Counted from the stretch's first letter, positions 19,701 through 64,000 are shown. The stretch is 64,000 nt of DNA from Ophelia neglecta (GCA_965285935.1 OZ260662.1:77128001-77192000), one strand, 5' to 3'. Notes: generated from the letters alone by a model not told the origin. Translations and numbers: made by a program.

Positions 19701-22700
19701 ATTTGTAAACATTTTCATTTTTTCAGTTGACCCCGGTAATTATTTAGCACTATTCCATTTGAACTGGTGTTTATGTCGGGGTGGGGTTCACATAGTTTTT
19801 TATTTCAGTAGATTCAACCATGTACTAAAAAGGTACAATGAGGAGGCTACATTTATTTTATATATATAACTTGTGGAGGGCAAGGGGTGAAAAAATGTAT
19901 CCAACACCCCTTCTCTGGCATTTGAAAGAAACCGCCCTTAGAATATACCAGAACATATAGGGAAAATTAAAATATAGAAAGAAAAATAGTATATTATCAT
20001 TTCTGTTTAACTTCCAGAAGAGGGGAATAAAATACCTAAATCTGCATGAATTTTCCTGTCTTTTCTTACAGCCAGACCATTCCTTTCAATTTCTTTCTCT
20101 ATTTTCTGAATTATTTTCACATTTTCTTCATTTTGGAAGAGAGAGCAAGCCTTGTGTCTCAGCCTGTTCAGCCTGCGTTTGGCAGTGTACATTTTGAAGG
20201 AGAGATATTCCTTGGTAGGAGCTAGGGTGACATCATGTGGCGGACCATCCACAAACAACCGTCCTGCATCAACTGAAGTCAAATTAAAAATGTTATATTT
20301 GAGATAGATTGTTTTCCAATTTCAACATCCTACAAATTTTGAAAAACATTTTTGTAGCATCACAATTCCTCTCCCATTCAAAGAAGAAAATCAGTTTTTC
20401 TAGCATTTGGAAAGGTACATTTTTGATGCTATTCAGTGACGTGAACTCCCTTTGTTGCTGGGTCATGATTTGGTGTTCTTTGGTTTTTCAGGCAATTTTT
20501 ATATGGTACAATATAGGTAAATCACAGGTAAAGTTCCTTGAATAATAAATTTTACACAACCTGGTGATGACTCGGGCCACTCTTTGGTGTATCGAATTAA
20601 TTAATCAATATAACCTGTCTAACTTACTATCAGTTGTCTTTTAGGATACTAATTGAGAGGTGGCCGTTTTGTAGAAAAGAATGCATTATTGAATATAAAA
20701 GCATTTGATTGGGCACTCACTTCTTTTAGGCTTGACAGCTTCAAAGTACTCATCTGGAGGTGTCAGGATGAAGTTGAGCCACCTGACAAATCCTCGCTCT
20801 TCCTTCTCCATCCATCTCTCGTCATAATACATGTTTTTTCCAGCAAACGGCATGGGATGTTTGGGTAGTGCTGAACACAGTCAGAAAATAAATGTTTTTT
20901 TATCACTTGTTTCTTAGAAAATACATTGTCCTTTATGAACTGAAAGTTAAGTTTTATTGCATTCAGCATATATAGAGAAAAAACACAGATTTAAATGAAG
21001 AAAAATTCACCTGTTGGCTTCTTAGACAGGACCAGTTTTGACTGAGCAAGACCCTGAGCCAGAGATTTGGACTTTCCCTTTGATGATGGGGTGGGTTTGG
21101 GTGGGCCACAAGATTTACTCATCCCAGCAAGAGCAGCTAAAAGAAAATTAGTGATATAATATAAATGCCTCACGACAATATGCAATGTCTTTCGTTACTT
21201 AAAAAAGGCAATACATGAAGCAAATGATTTTTTTCTCACATACCTTGCCTCCTAAGTTGTTGCGTTCTGTTCAAGCTCCTGTCATTTTGAGAGCTTTGCA
21301 GTGGCCTGCTCTTTAAATCTCCCCCTTTCTGACCTTCTATGCCAGACCGCAACTTCTTTACATCACTGCCGCTGGCATATTTCCTTCTGGGAACCGCCCT
21401 GTCCATGCTGTGAGGTCTTTTCTTACAGGCGAGAGGGTCTGTGGTGTTTAGAACAGCACGGCAAGCAGATAGGCTCACCCGCGGCTGAGCCTGTCTCCAG
21501 GGTTTCTGGTATCTTCTGCCACTCTTGTCATCATCAGGGTCATTCACCTGTGCGGTTTTGTAAGGGCTCCTACTGGGACGAGCGTTAAAAGAAATTCCAG
21601 TGTGAGGGACAGGTTGGTTAATTAAAGAATGATCCCTTTTACGTGGACTATGGTACAAGATGTCTTCAGAAAATACCTCATCTGTTATGACTTTATTTTT
21701 CTTTTCTATAGTAGCCAGCATGTCTGGTGTAGCATTGGCAACATTGTCACTTGCAATATGAGCCTCTTCAGCATTGCCAGAGAACAGTTCCTTCTTAGAT
21801 TTCTGGGTGGCTGGAGGTCTTCTGTGCAGGATATCAGGCTTTGACTTGGTCACTGTAAGGGAACTCACTCTTTTGGGTTCAGGGGAATCAGGCATTTCTT
21901 GGACCAATGACCCCCGTGCTTGAGGTGCAGACGACTTTATTACTGAATCCAGTGATTGAGGGAAAGCAGAAACATTAACAATTGGGCTTGCCATGTGAGA
22001 TTTCTGGAACATTCCCTTGTCAGTTGGTGGTGGAGCGGTCAGAGGAGTTGAAGAAAACCAGTTCTTAAGTTCATGCTTAACACTTGTCAGCTGGTCCACC
22101 ACCTCTTGGTGGCTGAAGGACTCGCTCAGCAGGGAAGTTGGACTCTCATCTAGCTCAGCAGGTTTGGTGAGCTGTGACCTACCAACAACTTCAGCCTGGG
22201 CAGGTTCATGGCTACCAGGGTCTAGGTTTAGTGGTGTTTGAATTGTTTCATCAGTGTTACCCAACACTTTTTGTACTTGGTATTGGACTGGGGTGAAACT
22301 TAAAGTTTTCTTTGCCTCATTTTCCATTTCTTCTTCTGGTACACTGGTATCAGAGGGTTCAGGAGAGCTTCTATCTTCTGTATCAGCTTCAAGACTATCA
22401 ACACTGAAACGCTCTTCCTTCCTCAGTTTTCTGATGGCTGGTATAAATGGTACTGATTCCATATATTCAGGGAGTAAATCAGATCTCTGAATTATGTCAT
22501 CAATAGTTTCAACTTGAGGGCTTTCATTTATTGTGATTTGGGGGGAAAGAGAAAACTCTGATCCATCTTGCTTTGGCTTTGAGAAACCCCTTAGGAATTT
22601 TGCAAATTCTTGCTGTTGGTAGACCACATCTGTTCCTGACTGTGAGTGAGATACAGTGGTACTGACAGTGTGTTGAAAGGAATCTGTCACCACTGTTGGC

Positions 22701-25700
22701 TCAATGCTGTGAACTTCGACCGAGTTAGGCCTGGAAGCCAGAACTTGCTCAGCTATGAGATTGACAGTTTCTGTGACAACCTTTGCTCTGTCGTCCTGTA
22801 TACATTCAGGTGAAGTTACCGTTATGTCAGCAGTTGAGTAGACATTGACAATCTCGGAGGTTGTAACAGTCTCAAAAATTTCGACTTTTTCTATTCTCTC
22901 TTCAAATATTGTGTCACAGTCGCTCTTCCATTCTGAGGTCTGATCAGGGACATAGCCCACAGAATCCTCAAAGATTTCATCCTCCAAGTCAGAGTTGACA
23001 GGGCTTCTGTATGGTGTGCTAGCCGGTGTCATATATGTAGCTGTGGTCACACTGTCCCCATCATTGGCATTGGGGTCAGATGATTCCAGTTGCTTTGCCA
23101 GCTTCTGTAGCGAATCATTCAAAACTTCTTGGTGAGTTAGTCCAGGATGGGAAAGAAGAGCCCCTTTAAGCTGCATTCCTCTGAATATGTCACCAACAAC
23201 ATCATTGGAATTATTGGTTAGAGATGACTTTTCATAAACTGGACTTTGCGCATTAAGACTATCTTGGTGTTCACATGGTTTAGGGCTCAAACTGCTGTTT
23301 AGTTTAGTGTAAGTACCGGAGCGTCTTAGGTTAGACCTGTCTGGGGTTTCAGAGTGGGAAATACTTAAGTTGTGAACAGTGGTGTCATCAGAGAAATGCA
23401 CAGCATGAGCTGGGTGTTTTCTGACCGGAGAGGCGGAACGAGCCACATTGGTGTCTGAGCTATGGACCTCTATGATGGGAGTATTACTACAAGTGTTCTC
23501 GTTCTTGTGAAAGGTGCTTCGTCTGATAGGTGTGCTGGGCAGATCAGGATCGTCCTTCTCAAAGGTAGATCTACTGGCCATCTCATCAGCTTCATCGATG
23601 GACTTAGGGGGTGTGAATACATGGCGTGTGTGGGCTGAATGTTTTGGTTGCAGCATGGAAAGCACTGATGGTTCTTTTTTGTCATATGTTGTCCTCCTCA
23701 GGGGTGATTGAGGCAGGGTAGGGTCTTCTTTTATAAATGTGGTACGTCTCGGGGGAGTGCCTGGAATTGCGGGGTCATCAAACTTAAAGAATTCATGTGC
23801 AGGTGCAGATTTTCTGTCCAGACTTGGACATTTTTCAGCAACATTAAAAGTTTTGTATGCTGGAGATTCAATAAATGTGGATGAACATTTTGGAATTGGA
23901 GTCTGCATGACCGAGCCATCTTCTTTGAAATAAGTTGAAGCTGGCTCAATGTTGCCAACAATGTGGGTTGAACTTAAGACCGACACATTGGTGTCTTCTT
24001 TATACCCAAATGTAGTCAAGTTGTTCATACCAGAGTTGCTAGGACCAAAAGCATGTCGCACAGGGACTTTTGGTATGGCCCACTCGGGGACATTCTTACT
24101 AGGCTGCAATACTCGAGTAGCATCAGGTGCTGAAGTGGAGCATTGCAAGTACTCAACTGTAATGTTTTCTTTAATCTCTTCATGTATTATATCCTGTTTT
24201 CTTCTCTCTACACTCTCTGATTTTGTCACATATACTTCAACAGTGGCGTCCACTAGAGGCTTCTTGGGCTTCCTATTCGATGTATTGTCATTGTTTTTAG
24301 GAGACAGAGGTGACCTATGATTCTGAGGTTTGTTTCCTGTGATCCTGGTAGCTGGTGCCTTCTTCTGGGCTAGAGCGGCCCTTCTGATCCCTCGTGACTG
24401 AAAGGGAGAAAATAGCACATGACATTCCTCATAACTTTTTTACTACTGGATACATCCAAGCAGAAATGATGGTACTGCATGGAAAATGTTCCTTTTGATA
24501 TGATAATAATTACTCAAGGGGACAGGTATATAATTTAAAGCTCCCCCCTCATCCCCCCCCCTCCAGCTCAAAAAATTCTATTAATTGGTAAGGACAAATA
24601 GCAAATTGGAATTTGTTTATTGATAACTGCCTATGTCTTCAGATGGAGAGGTTGTAGTTATAAAGCCAGCATGGAGCAGCAACGATTATAGACATGAACT
24701 ACTTCACAACAAGCTTTTAAACAACTTTTATACAAACACATCACCACTCTGTGGCACCATGTATTTGTTATGTGAATTGACAAACCAAATAAGTTAAAAG
24801 CCTGGACAGGCACAACAATGTTCTTTCATTTAAATGAATCTATTTTGAGAGTGGTATTTTCATGAAGTGGCTAGTGACATAATTCACAGATGTACATGTA
24901 TTAGTAGAGATATACTACACTATCCGATACTACTACTGATCAAATCAATATTGATATATCGGTATCGTCATCATTTTATAAGTAAAAGAAAATATTAAAC
25001 TACTTGAACACGAAACTTTTAGGACCCAAAGGGCTGAATTTAGAACCTAGGGCATAGAAATTTGTGGAGATTTACAAAATTTTGCCCTTAAATTCACTGC
25101 CTTTGTTTTAGCTCAAATGGAGCATTTTTTCAATGTAATGAAAAAAATGCTAATATGGCTTGACTAGATCCACTTTTCCCTTTTCTGATGAACATCTTAA
25201 ACCAATACTAGTATTAGTTAGAAAATATTGTTATCAGTATTGTTCAGATGTCAGACTGGTCAGTATTATGATGTTTAATCAAAACTATGAACAGCTCTAT
25301 TCCCTTGAAACACTACCTTTGACACCAAAGTCTTTAGAAATTATTGGTAACATTTTGGTGTCTGTATATCTTAGTATCTGTATTGTTTTACAAGTATCAT
25401 TATCCAAATATGGTTCATTTCAAATCAAACGGTATGCAGCTTTATGTATATTAAAGTATGTATATATATCAGTACATGCCTTTTTTGGCTTGGGTGGTTG
25501 TTCAGCCACTCCAAACAAGATTGTTTGTAGTCTATACACTCCATCAACCTGAAACAAAGCATTCAAACAATGAATATCAGCGCAGTAGAGAACTTCAATA
25601 TGGCCACATATAAATACTGTCACCTGTTCAGCTTAGTCTAAAATAATGTTGATACATTGGTTATATGCGATTGCAAATCAGGCTCTCATGATTTATGACT

Positions 25701-26916
25701 TGGTTGTGGGGTACTATTAATTAGAATCCTAGCTATATTCAGGCCAGGAACAGCGGATCAAAACAAAAAAGCCTAACTTTGGTTCCGTCTGTGTCTAGAA
25801 TAACTTGTTATAGCGGGATCATACTACTTATGCCAGATGTATTTTTCGTCATCAAGTTGTTCTGTCACAAGTGATGCAAGCAGGTTAAAAAAAACTTTAA
25901 AAATGCATTCAAATTGGCATTTTTGCCTAAGTATTTAAGGATAATGTAACAAGATGTTTAGGACTAAATAGGTATCAGTCATATATTGAATAACAAAGAA
26001 AAATGTGTGGCTATTCACAGGATTTATGGAACAAACGTATCAATTTTATATGTAAACAAAAAAAAATTAAATTCCTGTTACTAATGTACATATAACTTTG
26101 AAAGGGATCAATGAAAGGGCAGGGTTCTTGTTTTAAAAATAATTAGCTCAGATATCCTCTTTTCATTGTTTAATATTATGCTGGCATATTTCATAATTTG
26201 ATCTTTATATGAATATTAAAATAACCTTAAAAATGACAAGTTCTCTACAGTTCTGCTGCTCCAGAGGATCCCAGGTGAGTGTGAGAATCTGCTCATCCCC
26301 AGCATCCACACTGAATTCCACTAGATCAATGTGAAAGTTCTTGTTGAATGGGAATCTACAATAGAATGGTTTTCACAATAGAAATTTGTTTCTTAAAATC
26401 TAATGAATTTGATAATCAATGTTTTTCACCAGTATGAGAATTGTCAGTCAAACCCAGCTGGTCAGACATTTTATATTTGAACTGTTCAGAGAAGTTTCTT
26501 TATGAAAACATGTGGAATAATAAAACAGATTTCTATTTATTGCTTGCCTGATTTATATTTTTATTGTATTGGTTGCTTACTATACATGTATAACTTTTGA
26601 CTGAAAAGATAAATATGTTAATTTCTTACTTTTCAACAATAACTTCTTGGCAGCAGTCATGAGGATTTCTAACTTTGAGATGCCTTATTTTAGTTTTCCC
26701 AACTCTTATCTTTCCAAAGTCTATGCGAGGGGACTTGGAAAAGTGAGTAAGCTCCAAGACTTCAATCTCTTCATGAGGATCAACTGGGTTATGTTTTGTT
26801 TTATTCTCCACAGCAATTTCAAAACGCAGGGAGTTGTTGGGTTCAAACCAAGAACGTCGTCGTTTCTTGGGTATCTCCCCACCTCCAGGAGACTGGGAGA
26901 AAGCGGGGGAAGACAT
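1..26916 (-). CDS. ASPM: Abnormal spindle-like microcephaly-associated protein (ASPM/asp); multi-exon, 3' end beyond the left window edge
   Basis: Exons with consistent phases: 26916-26630, 26355-26226, 25548-25480, 24397-21244, 21136-21011, 20870-20721, 20272-20036, 19677-19610, 19299-19158, 18958-18828, 18433-18258, 17683-17538, 7341-7141, 6932-6820, 6291-6096, 5890-5817, 5696-5496, 5090-4896, 4771-<1. N-terminal ASH domain ([21 protein letters not shown]), [30 protein letters not shown] domains ([62 protein letters not shown]), then many IQ motifs. Confidence 0.96.
8055..8170. repeat. 22-bp minisatellite (CTGACCTGAGAACACCAATGGT, about 5 copies)
   Basis: Directly visible tandem units next to the edge of array 1. 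Confidence 0.85.
8495..8529 (-). terminator. Histone-type 3' stem-loop plus downstream element (copy 1)
   Basis: Minus strand reads GGTCCTCTTCAGGGCC (8529-8514), ACCAC ATCCTC, CAAGAGAG (8502-8495). Confidence 0.75.
8575..8997 (-). CDS. Uncharacterised 140-aa predicted helical protein, array 1 copy 1
   Basis: Intact 423-bp ORF, ACCATG context, conserved in 10 copies with no indels. Confidence 0.75.
   Translation of the reverse strand: MSMPTDNPWDTVSVFLDELSDVYSSLQTERLSPKSQLSAQYILNTTRQAGAIVKKIQRLFSLVRLLYQKCHHLNKKLEDVIFNGELKHYYPVWNKLQVYESERCVHSSSLLKLAGQVDRLMEKITTSHQTFLSQYPWLFG
10979..10994 (-). terminator. Histone-type 3' stem-loop (copy 2)
   Basis: GGTCCTCTTCAGGGCC, then CTCAC...CCAGAGGG (variant flanks). 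Confidence 0.65.
11040..11462 (-). CDS. Uncharacterised 140-aa protein, array 1 copy 2
   Basis: Intact ORF, near-identical to the other copies. Confidence 0.75.
   Translation of the reverse strand: MSMPTDNPWDTVSVFLDELSDVYSSLQTERLSPKSQLSAQYILNTTRQAGAIVKKIQRLFSLVRLLYQKCRHLNKKLEDVIFNGELKHYYPVWNKLQVYESERCVHSSSLLKLAGQVDRLMEKITTSHKTFVSQYPWLFG
13437..13452 (-). terminator. Histone-type 3' stem-loop (copy 3)
   Basis: GGTCCTCTTCAGGGCC, then CTCAC...CCAGAGGG. Confidence 0.65.
13499..13921 (-). CDS. Uncharacterised 140-aa protein, array 1 copy 3
   Basis: Intact ORF, near-identical to the other copies. Confidence 0.75.
   Translation of the reverse strand: MSMPADNPWDTVSVFLDELSDVYSSLQTERLSPKSQLSAQYILNTTRQAGAIVKKIHRLFSLVRLLYQKCHHLNKKLEDVIFNGELKHYYPVWNKLQVYESERCVHSSSLLKLAGQVDRLMEKITTSHQTFLSQYPRLFG
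15108..15123 (-). terminator. Histone-type 3' stem-loop (copy 4)
   Basis: GGTCCTCTTCAGGGCC ACCAC...CAAGGGGG. Confidence 0.7.
15169..15591 (-). CDS. Uncharacterised 140-aa protein, array 1 copy 4
   Basis: Intact ORF, near-identical to the other copies. Confidence 0.75.
   Translation of the reverse strand: MSMPADNPWDTVSVFLDELSDVYSSLQTERLSPKSQLSTQYILNTTRQAGTIVKKIQRLFSLVRLLYQKCHHLNKKLEDVIFNGELKHYYPVWNKLQVYESERCVHSSSLLKLAGQVDRLMEKITTSHQTFLSQYPRLFG
21244..24397 (-). CDS. ASPM: ASPM large low-complexity exon (3154 bp, S/T-P rich)
   Basis: 1060-aa ORF in the track; TTTCAG acceptor at 24398 and CAAG|GTATGT donor at 21243; phases fit the flanking exons. Confidence 0.9.
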
Positions 26917-35329: not shown

Positions 35330-36420
35330 TACCCCCCCCCCCCCCACCCTCCCTTTTATATAACCCTCCTCTCCTTGGTAAAGTACAGTATAAGAAACGA
35401 TTAACTATATCCGACTTAAGACACTATATGACCCACATGGTGTCTATGTGTTGTTAAGCCCCAAAAAATCCAAATCCTTGGCTGCCACATTTTGTGCTGA
35501 AAGCCCAACCCTCCCCCTGGCTGCCCCCCCCCCCCCATAGCCCCAGTCTCCTCTAATAACGCAATTTACATATTAATCTAAACATGTAAACAAATAGGTT
35601 CACAAAATTTTATCAGTACATCAGCATTGCATGAGAGTGCTGGATAACCCCCCCCCCCTCCTTCCCCCTTAGATAACCCTCCTCCCCTTGGCTGCCACTT
35701 TTTGTGCTGTATGCCTAAGCCTCCCCCTGGCTGCCCCCTCTCCCCTCTGTAGCCTCAGTCTAGTCTTATACTGTCATTTACATGTTAATCTCTTGTGACA
35801 ACAAAACAGGTTTCTCTGCATTTTATTAGTACATCAGCATTGCATGAGAGTGCTATGTTAACCCCCTCCCCCCTCCTTCCCCCTTAGATAACCCTCCTCT
35901 CCTTGCCTGCCCCTTTTTGTGCTGTATGCCTAACCCTCCCCCTGGCTGCCCCCTCTCCCCTCTGAAGCCTCAGTCTAGTTTTATACTGTCATCTACATGT
36001 TAATCTCTTGTGACATCAAAACAGGTTTCTCTGCATTTTATCAGTACATCAGCATTGCATAAGAGTGCTGGGTAACCCCCCCCCCTTTCCTTCCCCCTTA
36101 GATAAGCCTCCTCCCCTTGGCTGCCAACCCCCCCCCCCCCCAACACCTCCACCACCGTTTTATACTGTCATCTACATGTTAATCTCTTGTGACATCAAAA
36201 CAGGTTTCTCTGCATTTTATCAGTACATCAGCATTGCATAAGAGTGCTGGGTAACCCCCCCCCCCTTTTCCTTCCCCCTTAGATAAGCCTCCTCCCCTTG
36301 GCTGCCAACCCCCCCCCCCCAACACCTCCACCACCACCATAGCCATTTAGATGTTAATCTATTGTGTCAACAAAACAGGCTCACTCTGAATCTTATCAGT
36401 AATCAGCATGGCATGTTGAA
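35330..36420. repeat. C-rich tandem repeat, about 5 units of 176-214 bp
   Basis: Anchor agtacatcagcattgcat near 35614, 35828, 36042, 36221 and (degenerate) 36397; poly-C tracts. Confidence 0.85.
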
Positions 36421-52748: not shown

Positions 52749-53171
52749 ATGAGCATGCCTGCTGACAACCCTTGGGACACAGTGTCCGTCTTCCTGGATG
52801 AGCTGTCTGATGTGTACAGCAGTCTGCAGACAGAGAGGCTGAGTCCCAAGTCTCAGCTCTCAGCTCAGTATATACTGAACACCACTCGACAAGCTGGAGC
52901 CATTGTCAAAAAGATCCAGAGGCTTTTCAGCCTTGTGCGTCTGCTATACCAGAAGTGTCGTCATCTCAACAAGAAACTGGAAGATGTGATATTTAACGGT
53001 GAACTCAAGCACTACTACCCTGTGTGGAACAAGCTTCAGGTGTATGAGAGTGAACGCTGTGTGCACTCCTCCTCCCTCCTCAAGTTGGCTGGCCAAGTAG
53101 ACAGATTGATGGAGAAGATCACCACCTCCCACCAGACCTTCCTCTCCCAGTATCCCCGGCTGTTTGGCTGA
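52749..53171 (+). CDS. Uncharacterised 140-aa protein, array 2 copy A
   Basis: Intact 423-bp ORF. Confidence 0.75.
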   Translation: MSMPADNPWDTVSVFLDELSDVYSSLQTERLSPKSQLSAQYILNTTRQAGAIVKKIQRLFSLVRLLYQKCRHLNKKLEDVIFNGELKHYYPVWNKLQVYESERCVHSSSLLKLAGQVDRLMEKITTSHQTFLSQYPRLFG

Positions 53172-53217: not shown

Positions 53218-53252
53218 GGTCCTCTTCAGGACCATCACATCCTCCAAGAGAG
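53218..53252 (+). terminator. Histone-type 3' stem-loop plus downstream element (copy A)
   Basis: GGTCCTCTTCAGGACC (53218-53233), ATCAC ATCCTC, CAAGAGAG (53245-53252). Confidence 0.75.
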
Positions 53253-54850
53253 TGATACTCATACAATCAATGCTAGCAACATTGAGAAACCAATTGATTC
53301 TAAATTAACTCTTGTCTATTATCATTCTTCTGTAAATGATAATCCTTAAAATTTGAAACATGACATTAATGATCACTGGAAAACAGGTTTCCAAATGTAG
53401 ATAGATGATAGATAACCCCTTTACCAGCATTTAATGTAATACAATACAACTATCACCATGTGTCCAAATTAAAGGCTAAGCAATTTTTTTCATAACCATT
53501 GTTCTCAGGCTTAATTTACATTTCTTTGCAACTCAAATCAATAATTTCCAGATCCTGTGATTGGGGTGGAATGCCAAAGTGGCAACAACTATCATATGAC
53601 AGTTTCTTGACAACATAACCCATTCAATATATTACGTTTAATTGTTATTCACAACTTTTCACACCTTCCTGGTCTTTGATGTGATTCAATGCCTTAAATA
53701 AATCATCAGATGTGAAAAAAAAAACCATGATGTATATATCACACCCTTCTTGTGACTGTTAGTAATCCATGGAAATTCCAATACAATTGTTCTCAGGATA
53801 TAAACATTATGTCCTAATCAAAGATGTGGCTGAACTTCAGAACTGCCTTTGATGTTAAAAGTGTGATTTATGACTATTTATTTGTAAATATCAAATAATA
53901 ATAATCAAATGTCCTGTTCCTTTATTTTCTAAGTCCATTCTTAAATGCATTTGGTTATGTTTGGGTTTGAGTTGTATTGTGGTTGAACGGTTTAGGCATT
54001 TCATCTGGCATAATATCACTCAATGGGCCTTTCTTGGGGAGAGCTGGTCAGCTACTCTAGAGTGGATGGTCACCTCAGTACTAAGGGGATAGTGGCCATC
54101 ATTCTCTGTTCTGGGGGCTAATTTTATAACTATACTCTTAAAAGTTTGTACATATGAGAGTTCCCTTTTTAGTAGGACGTCACATCTTTGAATACCTGCA
54201 GCTTGCTGGCAGTTAACAATGCCAACTACCAAGGATAATCACTTGAAATGACAACTAGTATATATAGTAGCTGAGTTGCTTATGGATAAGTTGGTGAAAC
54301 TCATGGCAAGGGTTTCCCAGTTAGCCATGGTGTTTGGCTTGGCAGACTCAGTAAAATAGAATATTTTCTCTTTAATATTATTTAAAAGGCAAAATAAAGA
54401 AATGAAATGTGGAAAATGAATATACTATTACAGCGAGTAGTCCAGTACTTGAAATCTACTCAACGAGCCCATTGCCAACATGCTCAGCAGATTCTCCTTG
54501 GTTAGACTATTCAACTATTCACACTCAGTTGCTTCAATCTGAAACTTTTACCACAGAATATAGAGTCTTGTGGCTTCCTTCAATCAATTGTGCCTTCTTG
54601 AAGTCCTTTGATGTAAACAAACCACAATGTTTGTGGCTCTATTATGTTTGAAGTTAAGTTGCCACAAACATTGCTTACTGCTAATTGGTATCCATCAGAA
54701 AGGTGTAAAAGTGCTGCTCTTTCCTGATTGGTTGGTTAATAATCAGAGGCATCAGACAGACCTTTCTTGGTGAGCTGGTTTTGAGAGGTAGGGCAAACAC
54801 ATTTTGGCTTCCCAACTTGTCACACTCCTGTTACCAGATCTCTACTCATC

Positions 54851-55273
54851 ATGAGCATGCCTGCTGACAACCCTTGGGACACAGTGTCCGTCTTCCTGGA
54901 TGAGCTGTCTGATGTGTACAACAGTCTGCAGACAGAGAGGCTGAGTCCCAAGTCTCAGCTCTCAGCTCAGTATATACTGAACACCACTCGACAAGCTGGA
55001 ACCATTGTCAAAAAGATCCAGAGGCTTTTCAGCCTTGTGCGTCTGCTATACCAGAAGTGTCGTCATCTCAACAAGCAACTGGAAGATGTGATATTTAACG
55101 GTGAACTCAAGCACTACTACCCTGTGTGGAACAAGCTTCAGGTGTACGAGAGTGAACGCTGCGTGCACTCCTCCTCCCTTCTCAAATTGGCTGGCCAAGT
55201 AGACAGATTGATGGAGAAGATCACCACCTCCCACCAGACCTTCCTCTCCCAGTATCCCCGGCTGTTTGGCTGA
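54851..55273 (+). CDS. Uncharacterised 140-aa protein, array 2 copy B
   Basis: Intact 423-bp ORF. Confidence 0.75.
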   Translation: MSMPADNPWDTVSVFLDELSDVYNSLQTERLSPKSQLSAQYILNTTRQAGTIVKKIQRLFSLVRLLYQKCRHLNKQLEDVIFNGELKHYYPVWNKLQVYESERCVHSSSLLKLAGQVDRLMEKITTSHQTFLSQYPRLFG

Positions 55274-55319
55274 GACCCCTGGCAGTCTCACATCCATGTC
55301 TTATGGGTGTACATTCACT

Positions 55320-55354
55320 GGTCCTCTTCAGGACCATCACATCCTCCAAGAGAG
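55320..55354 (+). terminator. Histone-type 3' stem-loop plus downstream element (copy B)
   Basis: Identical to copy A. Confidence 0.75.
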
Positions 55355-56927
55355 TGATACTCATACAATCAATGCTAGCAACATTGAGAAACCAATTGAT
55401 TCTAAATTAACTCTTGTCTATTATCATTCTTCTGTAAATGATAATCCTTAAAATATGAAACATGACATTAATGATCACTGGAAAATAGGTTTCCAAATGT
55501 AGATAGATGATAGATAACCCCTTATCAGCATTTAATGTAATACAATACAACTATCACCATGTGTCCAAATTAAAGGCTAAGCAATTTTTTTCATAAACAT
55601 TGTTCTCAGGCTTAATTTACATTTCTTTGCAACTCAAATCAATAATTTCCAGATCCTGTGATTGGGATGGAATGCCAAAGTGGCAACAACTATCATATGA
55701 CAGTTTCTTGACAACATAACCCATTCAATATATTATGTTTAATTGTTATTCACAACTTGGTCTTTGATGTGATTCAATGCCTTAAATAAATCATCAGATG
55801 TGAAAAAAACCATGATGTATATATCACACCCTTCTTGTGACTGTTAGTAATCTATGGAAATTCCAATACAATTGTTCTCAGGATATAAACATTATGCCCT
55901 AATCAAAGATGTGGCTGAACTTCCGAACTGCCTTTGAGGTTAAAAGTGTGATTTATGACTATTTCTTTGTAAATATCAAATAATAATAATCAAATATCCT
56001 GTTCCTTTATTTTCTAAGTCCATTTTTAAATGCATTCAGTTATGTTTGGGTTTGAGTTCGATTGTGGTTGAACGGTTTAGGCATTTCATCTGGCATAATA
56101 TCACTCAATGGGCCTTTCTAGTTGAGAGCTGGTCAGCTACTCTAAGAGTGGATGGTCACCTCAGTACTAAGGGGATAGTGGCCATCATTCTCTGTTCTGG
56201 GGGCTAATTTTATCACTGTTTTTAAAAAGTTTGTATATTTGAGAGTTCCCTTTTTAGTAGGACGTCACATCTTTGAATACCTGCAGCTTCCTTGCAGTTA
56301 ACAATGCCAACTACCAAGGATAATCACTTGAGATGATTACTAGTATATATAGTAGCTGAGTTGCTTACAGATAAGTTGGCAAAACTCATCACAAGGGTTT
56401 CCCAATTAGCCATGTTGTTAGGCTTGGCTGACTCAGTAGAAGAGAGTATTCTCTGTTTAATATTATTTAAAAGGCAAAATAAAGAAATGAAATGTGGAAA
56501 ATGACCATTTCATTACAGCGAGTAGTCCAGTACTTGAAATCTACCCAACGAGTCCATTGCCATCATGTTCAGCAGATTCTCCTTGGTTAGACTATTCACA
56601 CTCAGTTGCTTCAATTTGAAACTCTTCCCACAGAATAAAGAGTCTTGTGGCTTCCTTCAATCAATTGTGCCTTCTTGAAGTCCTTTGATGTAAACAAACC
56701 ACAATGTTTGTGGCTCTATTATGTTTGAAGTTAAGTTGCCACAAACATTGCTTACTGCTAATTGGTATCCATCAGAAAGGTGTAAAAGTGCTGCTCTTTC
56801 CTGATTGGTTGGTTAATAATCAGAGGCATCAGACAGACCTTTCTTGGTGAGCTGGTTTTGAGAGGTAGGGCAAACACATTTTGGCTTCCCAACTTGTCAC
56901 ACTCCTGTTACCAGATCTCTACTCATC

Positions 56928-57350
56928 ATGAGCATGCCTGCTGACAACCCTTGGGACACAGTGTCCATCTTCCTGGATGAGCTGTCTGATGTGTACAACA
57001 GTCTGCAGACAGAGAGGCTGAGTCCCAAGTCTCAGCTCTCAGCTCAGTATATACTGAACACCACTCGACAAGCTGGAACCATTGTCAAAAAGATCCAGAG
57101 GCTTTTCAGCCTTGTGCGTCTGCTATACCAGAAGTGTCGTCATCTCAACAAGCAACTGGAAGATGTGATATTTAACGGTGAACTCAAGCACTACTACCCT
57201 GTGTGGAACAAGCTTCAGGTGTACGAGAGTGAACGCTGCGTGCACTCCTCCTCCCTTCTCAAATTGGCTGGCCAAGTAGACAGATTGATGGAGAAGATCA
57301 CCACCTCCCACCAGACCTTCCTCTCCCAGTATCCCCGGCTGTTTGGCTGA
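56928..57350 (+). CDS. Uncharacterised 140-aa protein, array 2 copy C
   Basis: Intact 423-bp ORF. Confidence 0.75.
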   Translation: MSMPADNPWDTVSIFLDELSDVYNSLQTERLSPKSQLSAQYILNTTRQAGTIVKKIQRLFSLVRLLYQKCRHLNKQLEDVIFNGELKHYYPVWNKLQVYESERCVHSSSLLKLAGQVDRLMEKITTSHQTFLSQYPRLFG

Positions 57351-57396
57351 GACCCCTGGCAGTCTCACATCCATGTCTTATGGGTGTACATTCACT

Positions 57397-57431
57397 GGTC
57401 CTCTTCAGGACCATCACATCCTCCAAGAGAG
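57397..57431 (+). terminator. Histone-type 3' stem-loop plus downstream element (copy C)
   Basis: Identical to copy A. Confidence 0.75.
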
Positions 57432-59004
57432 TGATACTCATACAATCAATGCTAGCAACATTGAGAAACCAATTGATTCTAAATTAACTCTTGTCTATTA
57501 TCATTCTTCTGTAAATGATAATCCTTAAAATATGAAACATGACATTAATGATCACTGGAAAATAGGTTTCCAAATGTAGATAGATGATAGATAACCCCTT
57601 ATCAGCATTTAATGTAATACAATACAACTATCACCATGTGTCCAAATTAAAGGCTAAGCAATTTTTTTCATAAACATTGTTCTCAGGCTTAATTTACATT
57701 TCTTTGCAACTCAAATCAATAATTTCCAGATCCTGTGATTGGGATGGAATGCCAAAGTGGCAACAACTATCATATGACAGTTTCTTGACAACATAACCCA
57801 TTCAATATATTATGTTTAATTGTTATTCACAACTTGGTCTTTGATGTGATTCAATGCCTTAAATAAATCATCAGATGTGAAAAAAACCATGATGTATATA
57901 TCACACCCTTCTTGTGACTGTTAGTAATCTATGGAAATTCCAATACAATTGTTCTCAGGATATAAACATTATGCCCTAATCAAAGATGTGGCTGAACTTC
58001 CGAACTGCCTTTGAGGTTAAAAGTGTGATTTATGACTATTTCTTTGTAAATATCAAATAATAATAATCAAATATCCTGTTCCTTTATTTTCTAAGTCCAT
58101 TTTTAAATGCATTCAGTTATGTTTGGGTTTGAGTTCGATTGTGGTTGAACGGTTTAGGCATTTCATCTGGCATAATATCACTCAATGGGCCTTTCTAGTT
58201 GAGAGCTGGTCAGCTACTCTAAGAGTGGATGGTCACCTCAGTACTAAGGGGATAGTGGCCATCATTCTCTGTTCTGGGGGCTAATTTTATCACTGTTTTT
58301 AAAAAGTTTGTATATTTGAGAGTTCCCTTTTTAGTAGGACGTCACATCTTTGAATACCTGCAGCTTCCTTGCAGTTAACAATGCCAACTACCAAGGATAA
58401 TCACTTGAGATGATTACTAGTATATATAGTAGCTGAGTTGCTTACAGATAAGTTGGCAAAACTCATCACAAGGGTTTCCCAATTAGCCATGTTGTTAGGC
58501 TTGGCTAACTCAGTAGAAGAGAGTATTCTCTGTTTAATATTATTTAAAAGGCAAAATAAAGAAATGAAATGTGGAAAATGACCATTTCATTACAGCGAGT
58601 AGTCCAGTACTTGAAATCTACCCAACGAGTCCATTGCCATCATGTTCAGCAGATTCTCCTTGGTTAGACTATTCACACTCAGTTGCTTCAATTTGAAACT
58701 CTTCCCACAGAATATAGAGTCTTGTGGCTTCCTTCAATCAATTGTGCCTTCTTGAAGTCCTTTGATGTAAACAAACCACAATGTTTGTGGCTCTATTATG
58801 TTTGAAGTTAAGTTGCCACAAACATTGCTTACTGCTAATTGGTATCCATCAGAAAGGTGTAAAAGTGCTGCTCTTTCCTGATTGGTTGGTTAATAATCAG
58901 AGGCATCAGACAGACCTTTCTTGGTGAGCTGGTTTTGAGAGGTAGGGCAAACACATTTTGGCTTCCCAACTTGTCACACTCCTGTTACCAGATCTCTACT
59001 CATC

Positions 59005-59427
59005 ATGAGCATGCCTGCTGACAACCCTTGGGACACAGTGTCCGTCTTCCTGGATGAGCTGTCTGATGTGTACAACAGTCTGCAGACAGAGAGGCTGAGT
59101 CCCAAGTCTCAGCTCTCAGCTCAGTATATACTGAACACCACTCGACAAGCTGGAACCATTGTCAAAAAGATCCAGAGGCTTTTCAGCCTTGTGCGTCTGC
59201 TATACCAGAAGTGTCGTCATCTCAACAAGCAACTGGAAGATGTGATATTTAACGGTGAACTCAAGCACTACTACCCTGTGTGGAACAAGCTTCAGGTGTA
59301 CGAGAGTGAACGCTGCGTGCACTCCTCCTCCCTTCTCAAATTGGCTGGCCAAGTAGACAGATTGATGGAGAAGATCACCACCTCCCACCAGACCTTCCTC
59401 TCCCAGTATCCCCGGCTGTTTGGCTGA
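59005..59427 (+). CDS. Uncharacterised 140-aa protein, array 2 copy D
   Basis: Intact 423-bp ORF. Confidence 0.75.
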   Translation: MSMPADNPWDTVSVFLDELSDVYNSLQTERLSPKSQLSAQYILNTTRQAGTIVKKIQRLFSLVRLLYQKCRHLNKQLEDVIFNGELKHYYPVWNKLQVYESERCVHSSSLLKLAGQVDRLMEKITTSHQTFLSQYPRLFG

Positions 59428-59473
59428 GACCCCTGGCAGTCTCACATCCATGTCTTATGGGTGTACATTCACT

Positions 59474-59508
59474 GGTCCTCTTCAGGACCATCACATCCTC
59501 CAAGAGAG
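59474..59508 (+). terminator. Histone-type 3' stem-loop plus downstream element (copy D)
   Basis: Identical to copy A. Confidence 0.75.
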
Positions 59509-61082
59509 TGATACTCATACAATCAATGCTAGCAACATTGAGAAACCAATTGATTCTAAATTAACTCTTGTCTATTATCATTCTTCTGTAAATGATAATC
59601 CTTAAAATATGAAACATGACATTAATGATCACTGGAAAACAGGTTTCCAAATGTAGATAGATGATAGATAACCCCTTTACCAGCATTTAATGTAATACAA
59701 TACAACTATCACCATGTGTCCAAATTAAAGGCTAAGCAATTTTTTTCATAAACATTGTTCTCAGGCTTAATTTACATTTCTTTGCAACTCAAATCAATAA
59801 TTTCCAGATCCTGTGATTGGGATGGAATGCCAAAGTGGCAACAACTATCATATGACAGTTTCTTGACAACATAACCCATTCAATATATTATGTTTAATTG
59901 TTATTCACAACTTGGTCTTTGATGTGATTCAATGCCTTAAATAAATCATCAGATGTGAAAAAAACCATGATGTATATATCACACCCTTCTTGTGACTGTT
60001 AGTAATCCATGGAAATTCCAATACAATTGTTCTCAGGATATAAACATTATGTCCTAATCAAAGATGTGGCTGAACTTCAAAACTGCCTTTGATGTTAAAA
60101 GTGTGATTTATGACTATTTATTTGTAAATATCAAATAATAATAATCAAATGTCCTGTTCCTTTATTTTCTAAGTCCATTCTTAAATGCATTTGGTTATGT
60201 TTGGGTTTGAGTTGTATTGTGGTTGAACGGTTTAGGCATTTCATCTGGCATAATATCACTCAATGGGCCTTTCTTGGGGAGAGCTGGTCAGCTACTCTAG
60301 AGTGGATGGTCACCTCAGTACTAAGGGGATAGTGGCCATCATTCTCTGTTCTGGGGGCTTATTTTATAACTATACTCTTAAAAGTTTGTACATATGAGAG
60401 TTCCCTTTTTAGTAGGAAGGTACAGCTTTGAATACCTGCAGCTTGCTGGCAGTTAACAATGCCAACTACCAAGGATAATCACTTGAAATGACAACTAGTA
60501 TATATAGTAGCTGAGTTGCTTATGGATAAGTTGGTGAAACTCATGGCAAGGGTTTCCCAGTTAGCCATGGTGTTTGGCTTGGCAGACTCAGTAAAATAGA
60601 ATATTTTCTCTTTAATATTATTTAAAAGGCAAAATAAAGAAATGAAATGTGGAAAATGAATATACTATTACAGCGAGTAGTCCAGTACTTGAAATCTACT
60701 CAACGAGCCCATTGCCAACATGCTCAGCAGATTCTCCTTGGTTAGACTATTCAACTATTCACACTCAGTTGCTTCGATCTGAAACTTTTACCACAGAATA
60801 TAGAGTCTTGTGGCTTCCTTCAATCAATTGTGCCTTCTTGAAGTCCTTTGATGTAAACAAACCACAATGTTTGTGGCTCTATTATGTTTGAAGTTAAGTT
60901 GCCACAAACATTGCTTACTGCTAATTGGTATCCATCAGAAAGGTGTAAAAGTGCTGCTCTTTCCTGATTGGTTGGTTAATAATCAGAGGCATCAGTCAGA
61001 AGTGAGCTGGTTTTGAGAGGTAGGGCAAACACATTTTGGCTTACCAACTTGTCACAATCCTGTTACCAGATCTCTACTCATC

Positions 61083-61505
61083 ATGAGCATGCCTGCTGAC
61101 AACCCTTGGGACACAGTGTCCGTCTTCCTGGATGAGCTGTCTGATGTGTACAACAGTCTGCAGACAGAGAGGCTGAGTCCCAAGTCTCAGCTCTCAGCTC
61201 AGTATATACTGAACACCACTCGACAAGCTGGAACCATTGTCAAAAAGATCCAGAGGCTTTTCAGCCTTGTGCGTCTGCTATACCAGAAGTGTCGTCATCT
61301 CAACAAGCAACTGGAAGATGTGATATTTAACGGTGAACTCAAGCACTACTACCCTGTGTGGAACAAGCTTCAGGTGTACGAGAGTGAACGCTGCGTGCAC
61401 TCCTCCTCCCTTCTCAAATTGGCTGGCCAAGTAGACAGATTGATGGAGAAGATCACCACCTCCCACCAGACCTTCCTCTCCCAGTATCCCCGGCTGTTTG
61501 GCTGA
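61083..61505 (+). CDS. Uncharacterised 140-aa protein, array 2 copy E
   Basis: Intact 423-bp ORF. Confidence 0.75.
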   Translation: MSMPADNPWDTVSVFLDELSDVYNSLQTERLSPKSQLSAQYILNTTRQAGTIVKKIQRLFSLVRLLYQKCRHLNKQLEDVIFNGELKHYYPVWNKLQVYESERCVHSSSLLKLAGQVDRLMEKITTSHQTFLSQYPRLFG

Positions 61506-61551
61506 GACCCCTGGCAGTCTCACATCCATGTCTTATGGGTGTACATTCACT

Positions 61552-61586
61552 GGTCCTCTTCAGGACCATCACATCCTCCAAGAGAG
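61552..61586 (+). terminator. Histone-type 3' stem-loop plus downstream element (copy E)
   Basis: Identical to copy A. Confidence 0.75.
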
Positions 61587-62019
61587 TGATACTCATACAA
61601 TCAATGCTAGCAACATTGAGAAACCAATTGATTCTAAATTAACTCTTGTCTATTATCATTCTTCTGTAAATGATAATCCTTAAAATATGAAACATGACAT
61701 TAATGATCACTGGAAAACAGGTTTCCAAATGTAGATAGATGATAGATAACCCCTTTACCAGCATTTAATGTAATACAATACAACTATCACCATGTGTCCA
61801 AATTAAAGGCTAAGCAATTTTTTTCATAAACATTGTTCTCAGGCTTAATTTACATTTCTTTGCAACTCAATAATTTCCAGATCCTGTGATTGGGATGGAA
61901 TGCCAAAGTGGCAACAACTATCATATGACAGTTTCTTGACAACATAACCCATTCAATATATTATGTTTAATTGTTATTCACAACTTTTCACACCTTCCTG
62001 GTCTTTGATGAGATTCAAT

Positions 62020-63045
62020 GCCTTAAATAAATCATCAGACGTGAAAAAAAACCATGATGTATATATCACACCCTTCTTGTGACTGTTAGTAATCCATGGA
62101 AATTCCAATACAATTGTTCTCAGGATATAAACATTATGTCCTAATCAAAGATGTGGCTGAACTTCAGAACTGCCTTTGATGTTAAAAGTGTGATTTATGA
62201 CTATTTATTTGTAAATGTGATTTATGACTATTTATTTGTAAATATCAAATAATAATAATCAAATGCCTGTTCCTTTATTTTCTAAGTACATTTTTAAATG
62301 CATTTAGTAATGTTTGGGTTTGAGTTCCATCGTAGTCGAATGTTTTAGGCCTTTCATCTGGCATTTTAATCACTCGCTGGGCCTTTCTTGTGGAGAGCTG
62401 GTCAGCTACTCCAGGGTGGACAGTCAACTCAGTTCTGATGGGATAGTGGCCATCATTATCTGTTCTAGGGGCTAATTTTATCACTTTGTTTTTACAAAGT
62501 TTGTATATTTGAGAGTTCCCTTTTTAGTAGGATGTCACATCTTTGAATACCTGCAGCTTCCTTGCAGTTAACAATGCCAACTACCAAGGATAATCACTTG
62601 AGATGAGTACTAGTATATATAGTAGCTGAGTTGCTTACAGATAAGTTCGTAAAACTCATCACAAGGGTTTCCCAATCTAGCCATGGTGTTAGGCTTGGCT
62701 GACTCAGCAGAAGAGAATATTCTCTGTTTAATATTATTTAAAAGGCAAAATAAAGAAATGAAATGTGGAAAATGACCATTTCATTACAGCGAGTAGTCCA
62801 GTACTTGAAATCTACCCAACAAGTCAATTGCCATCATGTTCAGCAGATTCTCCTTGGTTAGACTATTCACACTCAGTTGCTTCAATTTGAAATTTTCCCA
62901 CAGAATATAGAGTCTAGTGGCTTCCTTCAATCAGTTGTGCCTTCTCAGAGTCCTTTGATGTAAACAAACCACAATGTTTGTGGCTCTATTATCTGTTTGA
63001 AGTAAAGTTGCCACAAACATTGCTTACTGCTAATTGGTATCCATC
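62020..63045 (-). pseudogene. Decayed reading frame in the array spacer, head-to-head with the 140-aa ORF (best-preserved copy; homologous remnants in the other spacers)
   Basis: Successive protein-like fragments broken by stops and frameshifts: [17 protein letters not shown] / [27 protein letters not shown] / WVDFKYWTT / EYSLLLSQPSLTPWLDWETLVMSFTNL / VIKLAPRTDNDGHYPIRTELTVHPGVADQLSTRKAQRVIKMPDERPKTFDYDGTQTQTLLNAFK / [15 protein letters not shown]. Confidence 0.5.
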
Positions 63046-63199
63046 CAAAAGGTGTAAAAGTGCTGCTCTTTCCTGATTGGTTGGTTAATAATCAGAGGCA
63101 TCAGACAGACCTTTCTTCGTGAGCTGGTTACGAGAGGTAGGGCAAACACATTTTGGCTTCCCAACTTGTCACACTCCTGTTACCAGATCTCTACTCACC

Positions 63200-63622
63200 A
63201 TGAGCATGCCTGCTGACAACCCTTGGGACACAGTGTCCGTCTTCCTGGATGAGCTGTCTGATGTGTACAGCAGTCTGCAGACAGAGAGGCTGAGTCCCAA
63301 GTCTCAGCTCTCAGCTCAGTATATACTGAACACCACAAGACAAGCTGGAGCCATTGTCAAAAAGATCCAGAGGCTTTTCAGCCTTGTGCGTCTGCTATAC
63401 CAGAAGTGTCGTCATCTCAACAAGCAACTGGAAGATGTGATATTTAACGGTGAACTCAAGCACTACTACCCTGTGTGGAACAAGCTTCAGGTGTACGAGA
63501 GTGAACGCTGTGTGCACTCCTCCTCCCTCCTCAAGTTGGCTGGCCAAGTGGACAGATTGATGGAGAAGATCACCACCTCCCACCAGACCTTCCTCTCCCA
63601 GTATCCCCGGCTGTTTGGCTGA
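63200..63622 (+). CDS. Uncharacterised 140-aa protein, array 2 copy F
   Basis: Intact ORF from the ATG at 63200 (the track's 167-aa call uses an upstream GTG). Confidence 0.75.
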   Translation: MSMPADNPWDTVSVFLDELSDVYSSLQTERLSPKSQLSAQYILNTTRQAGAIVKKIQRLFSLVRLLYQKCRHLNKQLEDVIFNGELKHYYPVWNKLQVYESERCVHSSSLLKLAGQVDRLMEKITTSHQTFLSQYPRLFG

Positions 63623-63668
63623 GACTCCTGGCAGTCTTACACCCATGTCTACTGGGTGTACATTCACT

Positions 63669-63703
63669 GGTCCTCTTCAGGACCATCACATCCTCCAAGA
63701 GAG
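63669..63703 (+). terminator. Histone-type 3' stem-loop plus downstream element (copy F)
   Basis: Identical to copy A. Confidence 0.75.
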
Positions 63704-64000
63704 TATTACTCATACAATCAATGCTAGCAACATTGAGAAACCAACTGATTCTAAATTAACTCTGGTCTATTATCATTCTTCTGTAAATGATAATCCTTAA
63801 AATTTGAAACATGACATTAATGATCACTGGAAATCAGGTTTCCAAATGTAGATAGATGATAGATAACCCCTTTACCAGCATTTAATGGAATACAATACAA
63901 TAATCTCCATGTGTCCAAATTAAAGGCTAAGCAATTTTTTTCATTAACATAGTTCTCAGGCTTGATTTACATTTGGCAGCCTCACACCCTATCTCCCGGT

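Follow-up and report, generated by a model that had tools for sequence, protein, structure and literature searches.

A 64-kb stretch of the 762-Mb genome of Ophelia neglecta (C2:77,128,001–77,192,000; referred to as the window) harbors two tandem arrays of genes for a 140-amino-acid (aa) non-histone protein, each gene followed by what appears to be a complete histone-type 3′ processing signal, i.e., a stem-loop and downstream boxes. We put the probability that these genes use the SLBP/U7 pathway of replication-dependent histone mRNAs at roughly three in four. That the signal is conserved is strongly supported by sequence comparison within and outside this genome. A first-pass annotation of the window had proposed that a non-histone family co-opted the histone-type 3′ signal, a proposal that finds support at the sequence level.

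The 16-mer GGTCCTCTTCAGGRCC has exactly ten matches in the window, six on the plus strand (array 2; 53218, 55320, 57397, 59474, 61552, and 63669) and four on the minus strand (array 1; 8514, 10979, 13437, and 15108), and none across 100 shuffles of the window. A looser pattern for histone stem-loops in general, GGYYYTNNNNARRRCC, matches at these ten sites and nowhere else in the 64 kb. All ten matches lie 45–46 nt past the stop codon of an intact 140-aa open reading frame (ORF). The 3′ flank reads ATCAC, ACCAC (two array-1 copies) or CTCAC, and the element CAAGAGAG follows in seven of the ten copies. Pair 3 of the stem differs between the arrays and remains paired in both (U-A in array 2, U-G in array 1). 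Identity between the arrays is 0.94–0.96 from the hairpin through the 45 nt behind it and drops to 0.27–0.39 beyond that. The flanks, the element, the difference at pair 3 and the fading of similarity past the downstream element agree with the first-pass annotation. As duplicates, the ten copies do not count as independent evidence by number alone; such evidence is provided by paralogues and by homologues in other organisms.

The same genome, most of which is made up of about seven large chromosomes, contains large tandem histone arrays with repeats of 6.3–8 kb and stem-loops of 37–41 bits; its histones have N-termini of the protostome type. We used 17 distinct 3′ ends of its H1, H2A, H2B, H3, and H4 genes as a comparison set. 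In all 17, a CAAAAC-type flank, the hairpin GGCTCTTTTCAGAGCC and ACC are followed by a ACATCCTC box that leads into ACAGAA or AAAGAA. A second, species-specific box, ACAATCA or rarely GCAATCA, is located 30–35 nt past the stem, beyond the usual downstream element; ACAATCA is present throughout the histone arrays on C9, C1, C2, and C12 (L063–L076) and may extend the U7 pairing, act in termination or serve another factor. The window genes read ATC-ACATCCTC-CAAGAGAG and then ACAATCA, with a spacing equal to that of the histone genes, and their histone-like signal extends ∼45 nt beyond the hairpin.

A covariance model built from the 17 histone 3′ ends only (R1) detected the ten window copies at 31.7–43.3 bits (E 1e-4 to 3e-7) and had no other match in the window; a second stem-loop in the spacers was not found, the best score there being 10.4 bits (E 0.25). 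This comparison with the species' own histone stem-loops, which had been put forward together with the initial proposal, favors it mostly through the downstream element: the full element scores 39.2 bits vs 16.4 for the hairpin plus 8 nt, the downstream part adding ∼20 bits. Therefore, the part beyond the presumed cleavage site holds about half of the signal. Conservation past this site would be expected of a processing signal and not of a motif in the 3′ untranslated region (UTR) of a mature mRNA. A model of the downstream part alone (R2) kept only two matches and, owing to a poor alignment, had little power; in its place we compared R1 scores with and without the downstream part.

The 140-aa family comprises ∼32 copies, ten in the window, two on C7 (83–85% protein identity to the window copies) and ∼19 on C1 (64–67%). 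All of the 29 ORFs that were checked are intact, with ratios of non-synonymous to synonymous divergence (dN/dS) of 0.09–0.45, and the protein is under purifying selection. An inverted CCAAT box, CTGATTGGTT, lies ∼125 nt 5′ of the ATG in all paralogues and in foreign homologues. Each repeat unit is an intronless gene with a CCAAT-box promoter. Every paralogue carries a hairpin 45–58 nt past the stop, in the form GGCCCT-TCTC-AGGGCC on C1. Between C2 and C1 genes, which are separated by a dS of 0.49–0.63, identity is 0.46–0.49 from stop to hairpin (a randomized 3′ UTR), 0.69–0.75 in the hairpin, 0.52–0.69 in the 45 nt past it and ∼0.3 further downstream. The C7 genes match those on C2 at 92% of ORF positions and at 100% in the 45-nt block.

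The hairpins of the family, 11 distinct sequences, all fit GGYYYU-NNNN-ARRRCC and pair in 66 of 66 cells, as compared to only 9–61% pairing with shifted partner columns. Stem pairs 3 and 4 vary on both sides (C-G, U-A, U-G), i.e., two of the six pairs covary, and pairs 1, 2, 5, and 6 are invariant. These four fixed pairs follow the pattern of the SLBP-binding consensus, and the invariant pairs of histone stem-loops (G-C, G-C at the base and U-A at the top) are among them.

An exhaustive profile search revealed 12 real relatives in other organisms, all of them metagenomic proteins; a Tenacibaculum repeat protein (P0004) and a Phytophthora protein (P0012) turned out to be false positives of this search. 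Three relatives have the hairpin: P0001 (44% identity) carries GGTTCT-TTTC-AGAACC after a run of eight A residues 65 nt past the stop, P0003 (profile E 8e-27) carries GGTCCT-TTTC-AGGACC at 44 nt, and P0006 (∼20% identity) carries GGTCCT-TTTA-AGGACC with a CACAAAC flank at 29 nt. CAAAAC-type 5′ flanks are found in P0001, P0006 and a partner gene on C1 described below. The hairpin, whose retention with covariation in homologous genes would follow from the initial proposal, is thus kept with compensatory changes in diverged paralogues and in three foreign homologues.

The histone stem-loop model of Rfam (Histone3, RF00032), with which the elements were to be scored according to the first-pass annotation, recognizes them, aligning end to end with the window copies at 25 bits (E 5e-5 in a 300-nt search). 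This score is below the curated gathering score of 34, and a scan of the whole window at the gathering threshold gave zero matches. The three foreign hairpins also fall below 34 (31.0, 31.1, and 33.5 bits); the partner genes and a distant relative on C12 (L075) exceed it (36.9, 37.7, and 39.6 bits). Loop uracils 1 and 3 contact SLBP (Brooks et al. 2015, PMC4604434). Both are present in the C1 paralogues (UCUC), the partner (UAUC) and the foreign homologues (UUUC/UUUA); the CUUC loop of the window and C7 copies has a uracil at position 3 only.

The sub-threshold Rfam score and the C-first loop of the window copies count against use of the histone pathway, and so do several further observations. 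The 5′ flank of the window hairpins (CACT/CCCT) lacks the usual A run, a caveat that, like the loop, had been stated from the start. Two C1 copies have one broken stem pair each, and concerted evolution within the arrays inflates apparent conservation. AATAAA/ATTAAA hexamers 233 and ∼450 nt downstream would allow read-through polyadenylation. The hairpin is missing from five more distant homologues, in which AATAAA lies 2–98 nt past the stop, and from P0002, which also lacks the boxes and has an AATAAA near its stop. Finally, no U7 small nuclear RNA was found in an RF00066 search of the genome in which 65 of 172,672 candidates were scored; matches to U7 patterns (complement of the histone box plus Sm-like site) were near control level, and all 11 candidates inspected lacked both a 3′ hairpin and an Rfam U7 score. 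As for P0002 itself (L078:5447–5995), its C-terminus lies in a changed frame on a long-read contig of 2x coverage from the same sample as the foreign contig L079, indicating either a pseudogene or an assembly indel.

The genome contains one SLBP gene; the single match to the SLBP RNA-binding domain (C1:122,636,378–122,636,783) is located between the C1 histone arrays at 120.9 and 124.6 Mb. From the signal we infer the use of SLBP and U7, the cleavage site, the time of expression and the lack of a poly(A) tail. In this scheme, the hairpin would be recognized by SLBP, and the U7 small nuclear ribonucleoprotein would base-pair with the downstream element, the U7 5′ end pairing with the histone box ACATCCTC-ACAGAA as well as with the family boxes CCAAGAGAG or CUCAGAGG. 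The histone cleavage complex would then cut 4–5 nt past the stem, e.g., at about 55339–55340, leaving a short mRNA without poly(A). Processing, translation and decay of this mRNA would follow SLBP and hence track histone mRNA, either in S phase or in the oocyte and early embryo, and the tandem arrays and an ancestral divergent gene pair could provide histone-like bulk output.

As both kinds of 3′ signal are present, the genes might instead be processed in two ways: cycling or embryonic cells would make mRNA ending in the stem-loop, and other cells a longer, polyadenylated form. Both signals are known from some histone genes, and polyadenylation at downstream sites is established for histone genes that are misprocessed or of the variant type. 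H2A.X is among the keywords of PMC4604434. We regard dual processing as unlikely, however: the hexamers are expected by chance in spacer DNA of 38% GC, and the spacer is not conserved between the arrays.

A captured histone 3′ flank could also be an inactive relic that persists through gene conversion and youth, the mRNAs being polyadenylated 233–450 nt downstream. This would account for the poly(A)-type hexamers and for the AATAAA adjoining the stop in distant homologues, and it sits well with window copies that fall under the Rfam cut-off, with their C-first loop and non-A 5′ flank, and with homogenization of the arrays by concerted evolution. It does not sit well with paralogues at dS 0.5–0.6 that keep hairpin and boxes next to a randomized 3′ UTR, with compensatory stem changes and zero broken pairs among the 11 distinct hairpins, with hairpins in three other organisms at protein identities down to ∼20%, or with a 45-nt block better conserved between C2 and C7 than the ORF, and we consider a relic quite improbable. 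Least credible by far is a hairpin acting at the DNA level in a mobile element (Helitron-like terminal hairpin or terminator), with the arrays as selfish repeats carrying an element-encoded ORF: array 1 is probably located inside an intron, and canonical histone stem-loops also occur 3′ of transposon-type ORFs (Harbinger-like in L070–L072, GDSL/SGNH in L069), but the repeat unit has neither terminal repeats nor a transposase, a conserved CCAAT promoter precedes each gene, the two downstream boxes are common with bona fide histone genes, and the SLBP RNA consensus is matched strand-specifically, always in sense orientation, 29–65 nt past an ORF under purifying selection.

The GDSL/SGNH esterase-type ORF of L069 (436–1232; C8:9.03 Mb; 238 aa, Pfam E 5e-8) is followed after 23 nt by GGCCCTTTTCAGGGCC and a histone-like downstream element that has the top non-histone R1 score (54.9 bits); possibly it is an ORF1-type gene of a retroelement that employs a histone 3′ end. 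L070, L071, and L072 (C12:67.90, 72.55, and 73.20 Mb) contain Harbinger-type transposase remnants, frame-shifted ORFs with a GDSGYPL motif, and have a canonical histone stem-loop and both downstream boxes 300–425 nt 3′ (R1 45.9 bits). Stem-loop 16-mers also occur by themselves in small tandem arrays with a spacing of 33, 53, or 66 nt (C1:10764033–10764114, C8:4592329–4592450, and C7:95044012–95044093).

The protein had been described as non-histone, and indeed no histone Pfam domain was found and no histone was among the fold matches. The AF2 model, with a predicted local distance difference test (pLDDT) value of 91.7, shows helices at residues 10–27, 33–83, and 86–134; accordingly modeled, the 140-aa protein is predicted to be an orphan three-helix bundle without a histone fold. 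All Pfam matches of the protein were sub-threshold, and two candidates were rejected: Mediator subunit 30 (PF11315; 19.8 bits, E 1e-3, vs a gathering cut-off of 28.1, in only two of 14 family members) and the ING N-terminal domain (PF12998; Pfam E 0.025 in one of 14, TM score 0.56 to an ING3 model). Like these helical-hairpin domains, the protein has long antiparallel helices, but it shares no motif with them; since the matches lie below curated cut-offs, lack a common motif and are equaled by generic coiled-coil matches, they are not evidence of membership. A PDB profile search returned designed coiled coils only, and Foldseek against PDB and ESM Atlas generic helical hairpins only. None of the protein collections searched holds a named entry for any family member, and the contig index searched has no record identical to the window protein.

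Besides the 140-aa genes (subfamily A), R1 also matched the opposite strand at C1 loci and in the foreign contig L079. In the array at C1:42.87 Mb, every A gene has a head-to-head partner (subfamily B) ∼480 nt away, a distant paralogue of 149–158 aa that has a YYP-WN core in common with A. Its 3′ end consists of GGCCCT-TATC-AGGGCC, a ACTCCAAGAG box and ACAATCA. L079 harbors an orthologous partner in the same head-to-head layout, and its downstream element is nearly identical to the histone element of the O. neglecta genome. In the array at C1:43.03 Mb, the partner ORF is decayed and the partner hairpin is still there. Decayed partner remnants in the array-2 spacers are weak matches (tblastn E 0.055–0.23, with the intact partner from L051 as query). 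The ancestral unit was a divergent pair of paralogues with one stem-loop each. A complex prediction for A and B scored 0.00, which gives no verdict either for or against binding.

The family may extend considerably further. L075 (C12) contains a 121-aa ORF that stops 36 nt short of a canonical histone hairpin. The alignment of this ORF to the family profile is weak (hhalign probability 56%, E 1e-4), and it has at least 78 weak paralogues arrayed on C7, on C5 (42.66–42.70 Mb) and at further loci. In the reverse search, the family profile finds the C7 array at E 1e-4. The pattern GGYCCTYYTCAGGRCC has 108 genomic matches vs 6 for a control pattern, and ∼50 of them are located exactly 77 nt past the ends of protein matches in the array at C7:95.70–95.80 Mb, which has a period of 1.5 kb. 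These distantly related arrays appear to bring the total to more than 100 genes. We lean towards a broader view: a non-histone superfamily of >100 genes, expressed via SLBP/U7 and ancestrally organized as divergent pairs of genes for paralogous helical proteins in tandem arrays, would be present here and in further organisms, at least two or three in number and mostly marine. It would be the first cellular class of non-histone mRNAs ending in a stem-loop instead of poly(A). Synthesis of its products would keep pace with that of histones, and they would thus probably have a role at chromatin or in the cell cycle.

The genes resemble replication-dependent histone genes in being intronless and arranged in tandem arrays and divergent pairs, and their mRNA 3′ ends resemble those of histones (RF00032) in the 6-bp GGYYYU/ARRRCC stem with a 4-nt loop, the short 3′ UTR (45–58 nt in the family vs 36–54 nt in the own histones) and a purine-containing box whose distance from the stem equals that in the own histone genes. 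Many near-identical head-to-tail units, with a promoter and a stem-loop for each gene, are likewise typical of sea-urchin-type early-embryonic histone batteries and of the species' own histone repeats. In contrast to histone mRNAs, the product is a three-helix orphan protein, and in the window copies the loop is CUUC (UCUC, UAUC, UUUC, or UUUA in relatives), the 5′ flank is non-A and the Rfam score sub-threshold. Unlike histone batteries, the units are only 1.5–3 kb long, hold either one gene or two, all from a single non-histone superfamily, and are found on several chromosomes away from the histone arrays.

Histone mRNAs have been described as the sole cellular mRNAs that lack a poly(A) tail, with human SLBP binding to these RNAs only (PMC4604434); our literature search yielded no description of histone stem-loops behind non-histone genes. 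If the assignment to the SLBP/U7 pathway is right, a non-histone family with the full signal, conserved across several species, would break this exclusivity. Nature would then have provided a test of which benefits, apart from supplying histones, the stem-loop pathway confers, for example coupling to S phase, storage of maternal mRNA or bulk synthesis in stoichiometric amounts. The family would also point to a protein pair made in histone-like amounts, and would mean that whole gene families can escape transcriptomes based on poly(A) selection and the annotations derived from them.

Table 1. Genes, 3′ elements and related features of the two arrays (window coordinates; downstream block, the 45 nt past the stem-loop).
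Feature	Position	Strand	Remarks
Array 1 stem-loop (8514–8529) and downstream block	8469–8529	−	U-G at pair 3; R1 43.3 bits
Array 1 140-aa ORF	8575–8997	−	
Array 1 stem-loop and downstream block	10934–10994	−	R1 31.7 bits
Array 1 140-aa ORF	11040–11462	−	
Array 1 stem-loop and downstream block	13392–13452	−	R1 33.1 bits
Array 1 140-aa ORF	13499–13921	−	
Array 1 stem-loop and downstream block	15063–15123	−	R1 36.4 bits
Array 1 140-aa ORF	15169–15591	−	
Array 2 copy 1, 140-aa ORF	52749–53171	+	Subfamily A; intact, under purifying selection
Array 2 copy 1, stem-loop (53218–53233) and 45-nt downstream block	53218–53278	+	Box like the histone downstream element, ACAATCA box; R1 39.2 bits
Inverted CCAAT box CTGATTGGTT	54724–54733	+	127 nt 5′ of copy 2 ATG
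Array 2 copy 2, 140-aa ORF	54851–55273	+	
Array 2 copy 2, stem-loop (55320–55335) and downstream block	55320–55380	+	ACAATCA box at 55365–55371
Decayed divergent partner (subfamily B), remnant in spacer	56372–56446	−	tblastn with intact L051 partner
Array 2 copy 3, 140-aa ORF	56928–57350	+	
Array 2 copy 3, stem-loop and downstream block	57397–57457	+	
Further subfamily B partner remnants in spacers	58449–58523, 62642–62698		tblastn
Array 2 copy 4, 140-aa ORF	59005–59427	+	
Array 2 copy 4, stem-loop and downstream block	59474–59534	+	
Array 2 copy 5, 140-aa ORF	61083–61505	+	
Array 2 copy 5, stem-loop and downstream block	61552–61612	+	
Array 2 copy 6, 140-aa ORF	63200–63622	+	ATG-started portion of a 167-aa open frame
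Array 2 copy 6, stem-loop and downstream block	63669–63729	+	R1 39.8 bits

An extra copy of the array-1 variant, GGTCCTCTTCAGGGCC, is located at C2:77192013–77192028, 13 nt past base 64000 of the window and 344 nt 3′ of the last array-2 stem-loop, and probably marks a further, truncated unit. Tandem repeats of 215 and 179 nt at 35476–36414 (2.5–3 copies, 87–90% matches) bear no relation to the gene arrays. The minus strand of positions 1–27000 harbors an ASPM-like host gene with an ASH-domain exon at 26626–26916 (Pfam E 3e-8), a 1060-aa open exon at 21236–24418 and a CH-domain-like ORF at 7079–7396 that has no Pfam match. Array 1 (8469–15591) lies between exons of this gene on the same strand and is thus probably intronic and sense-oriented.

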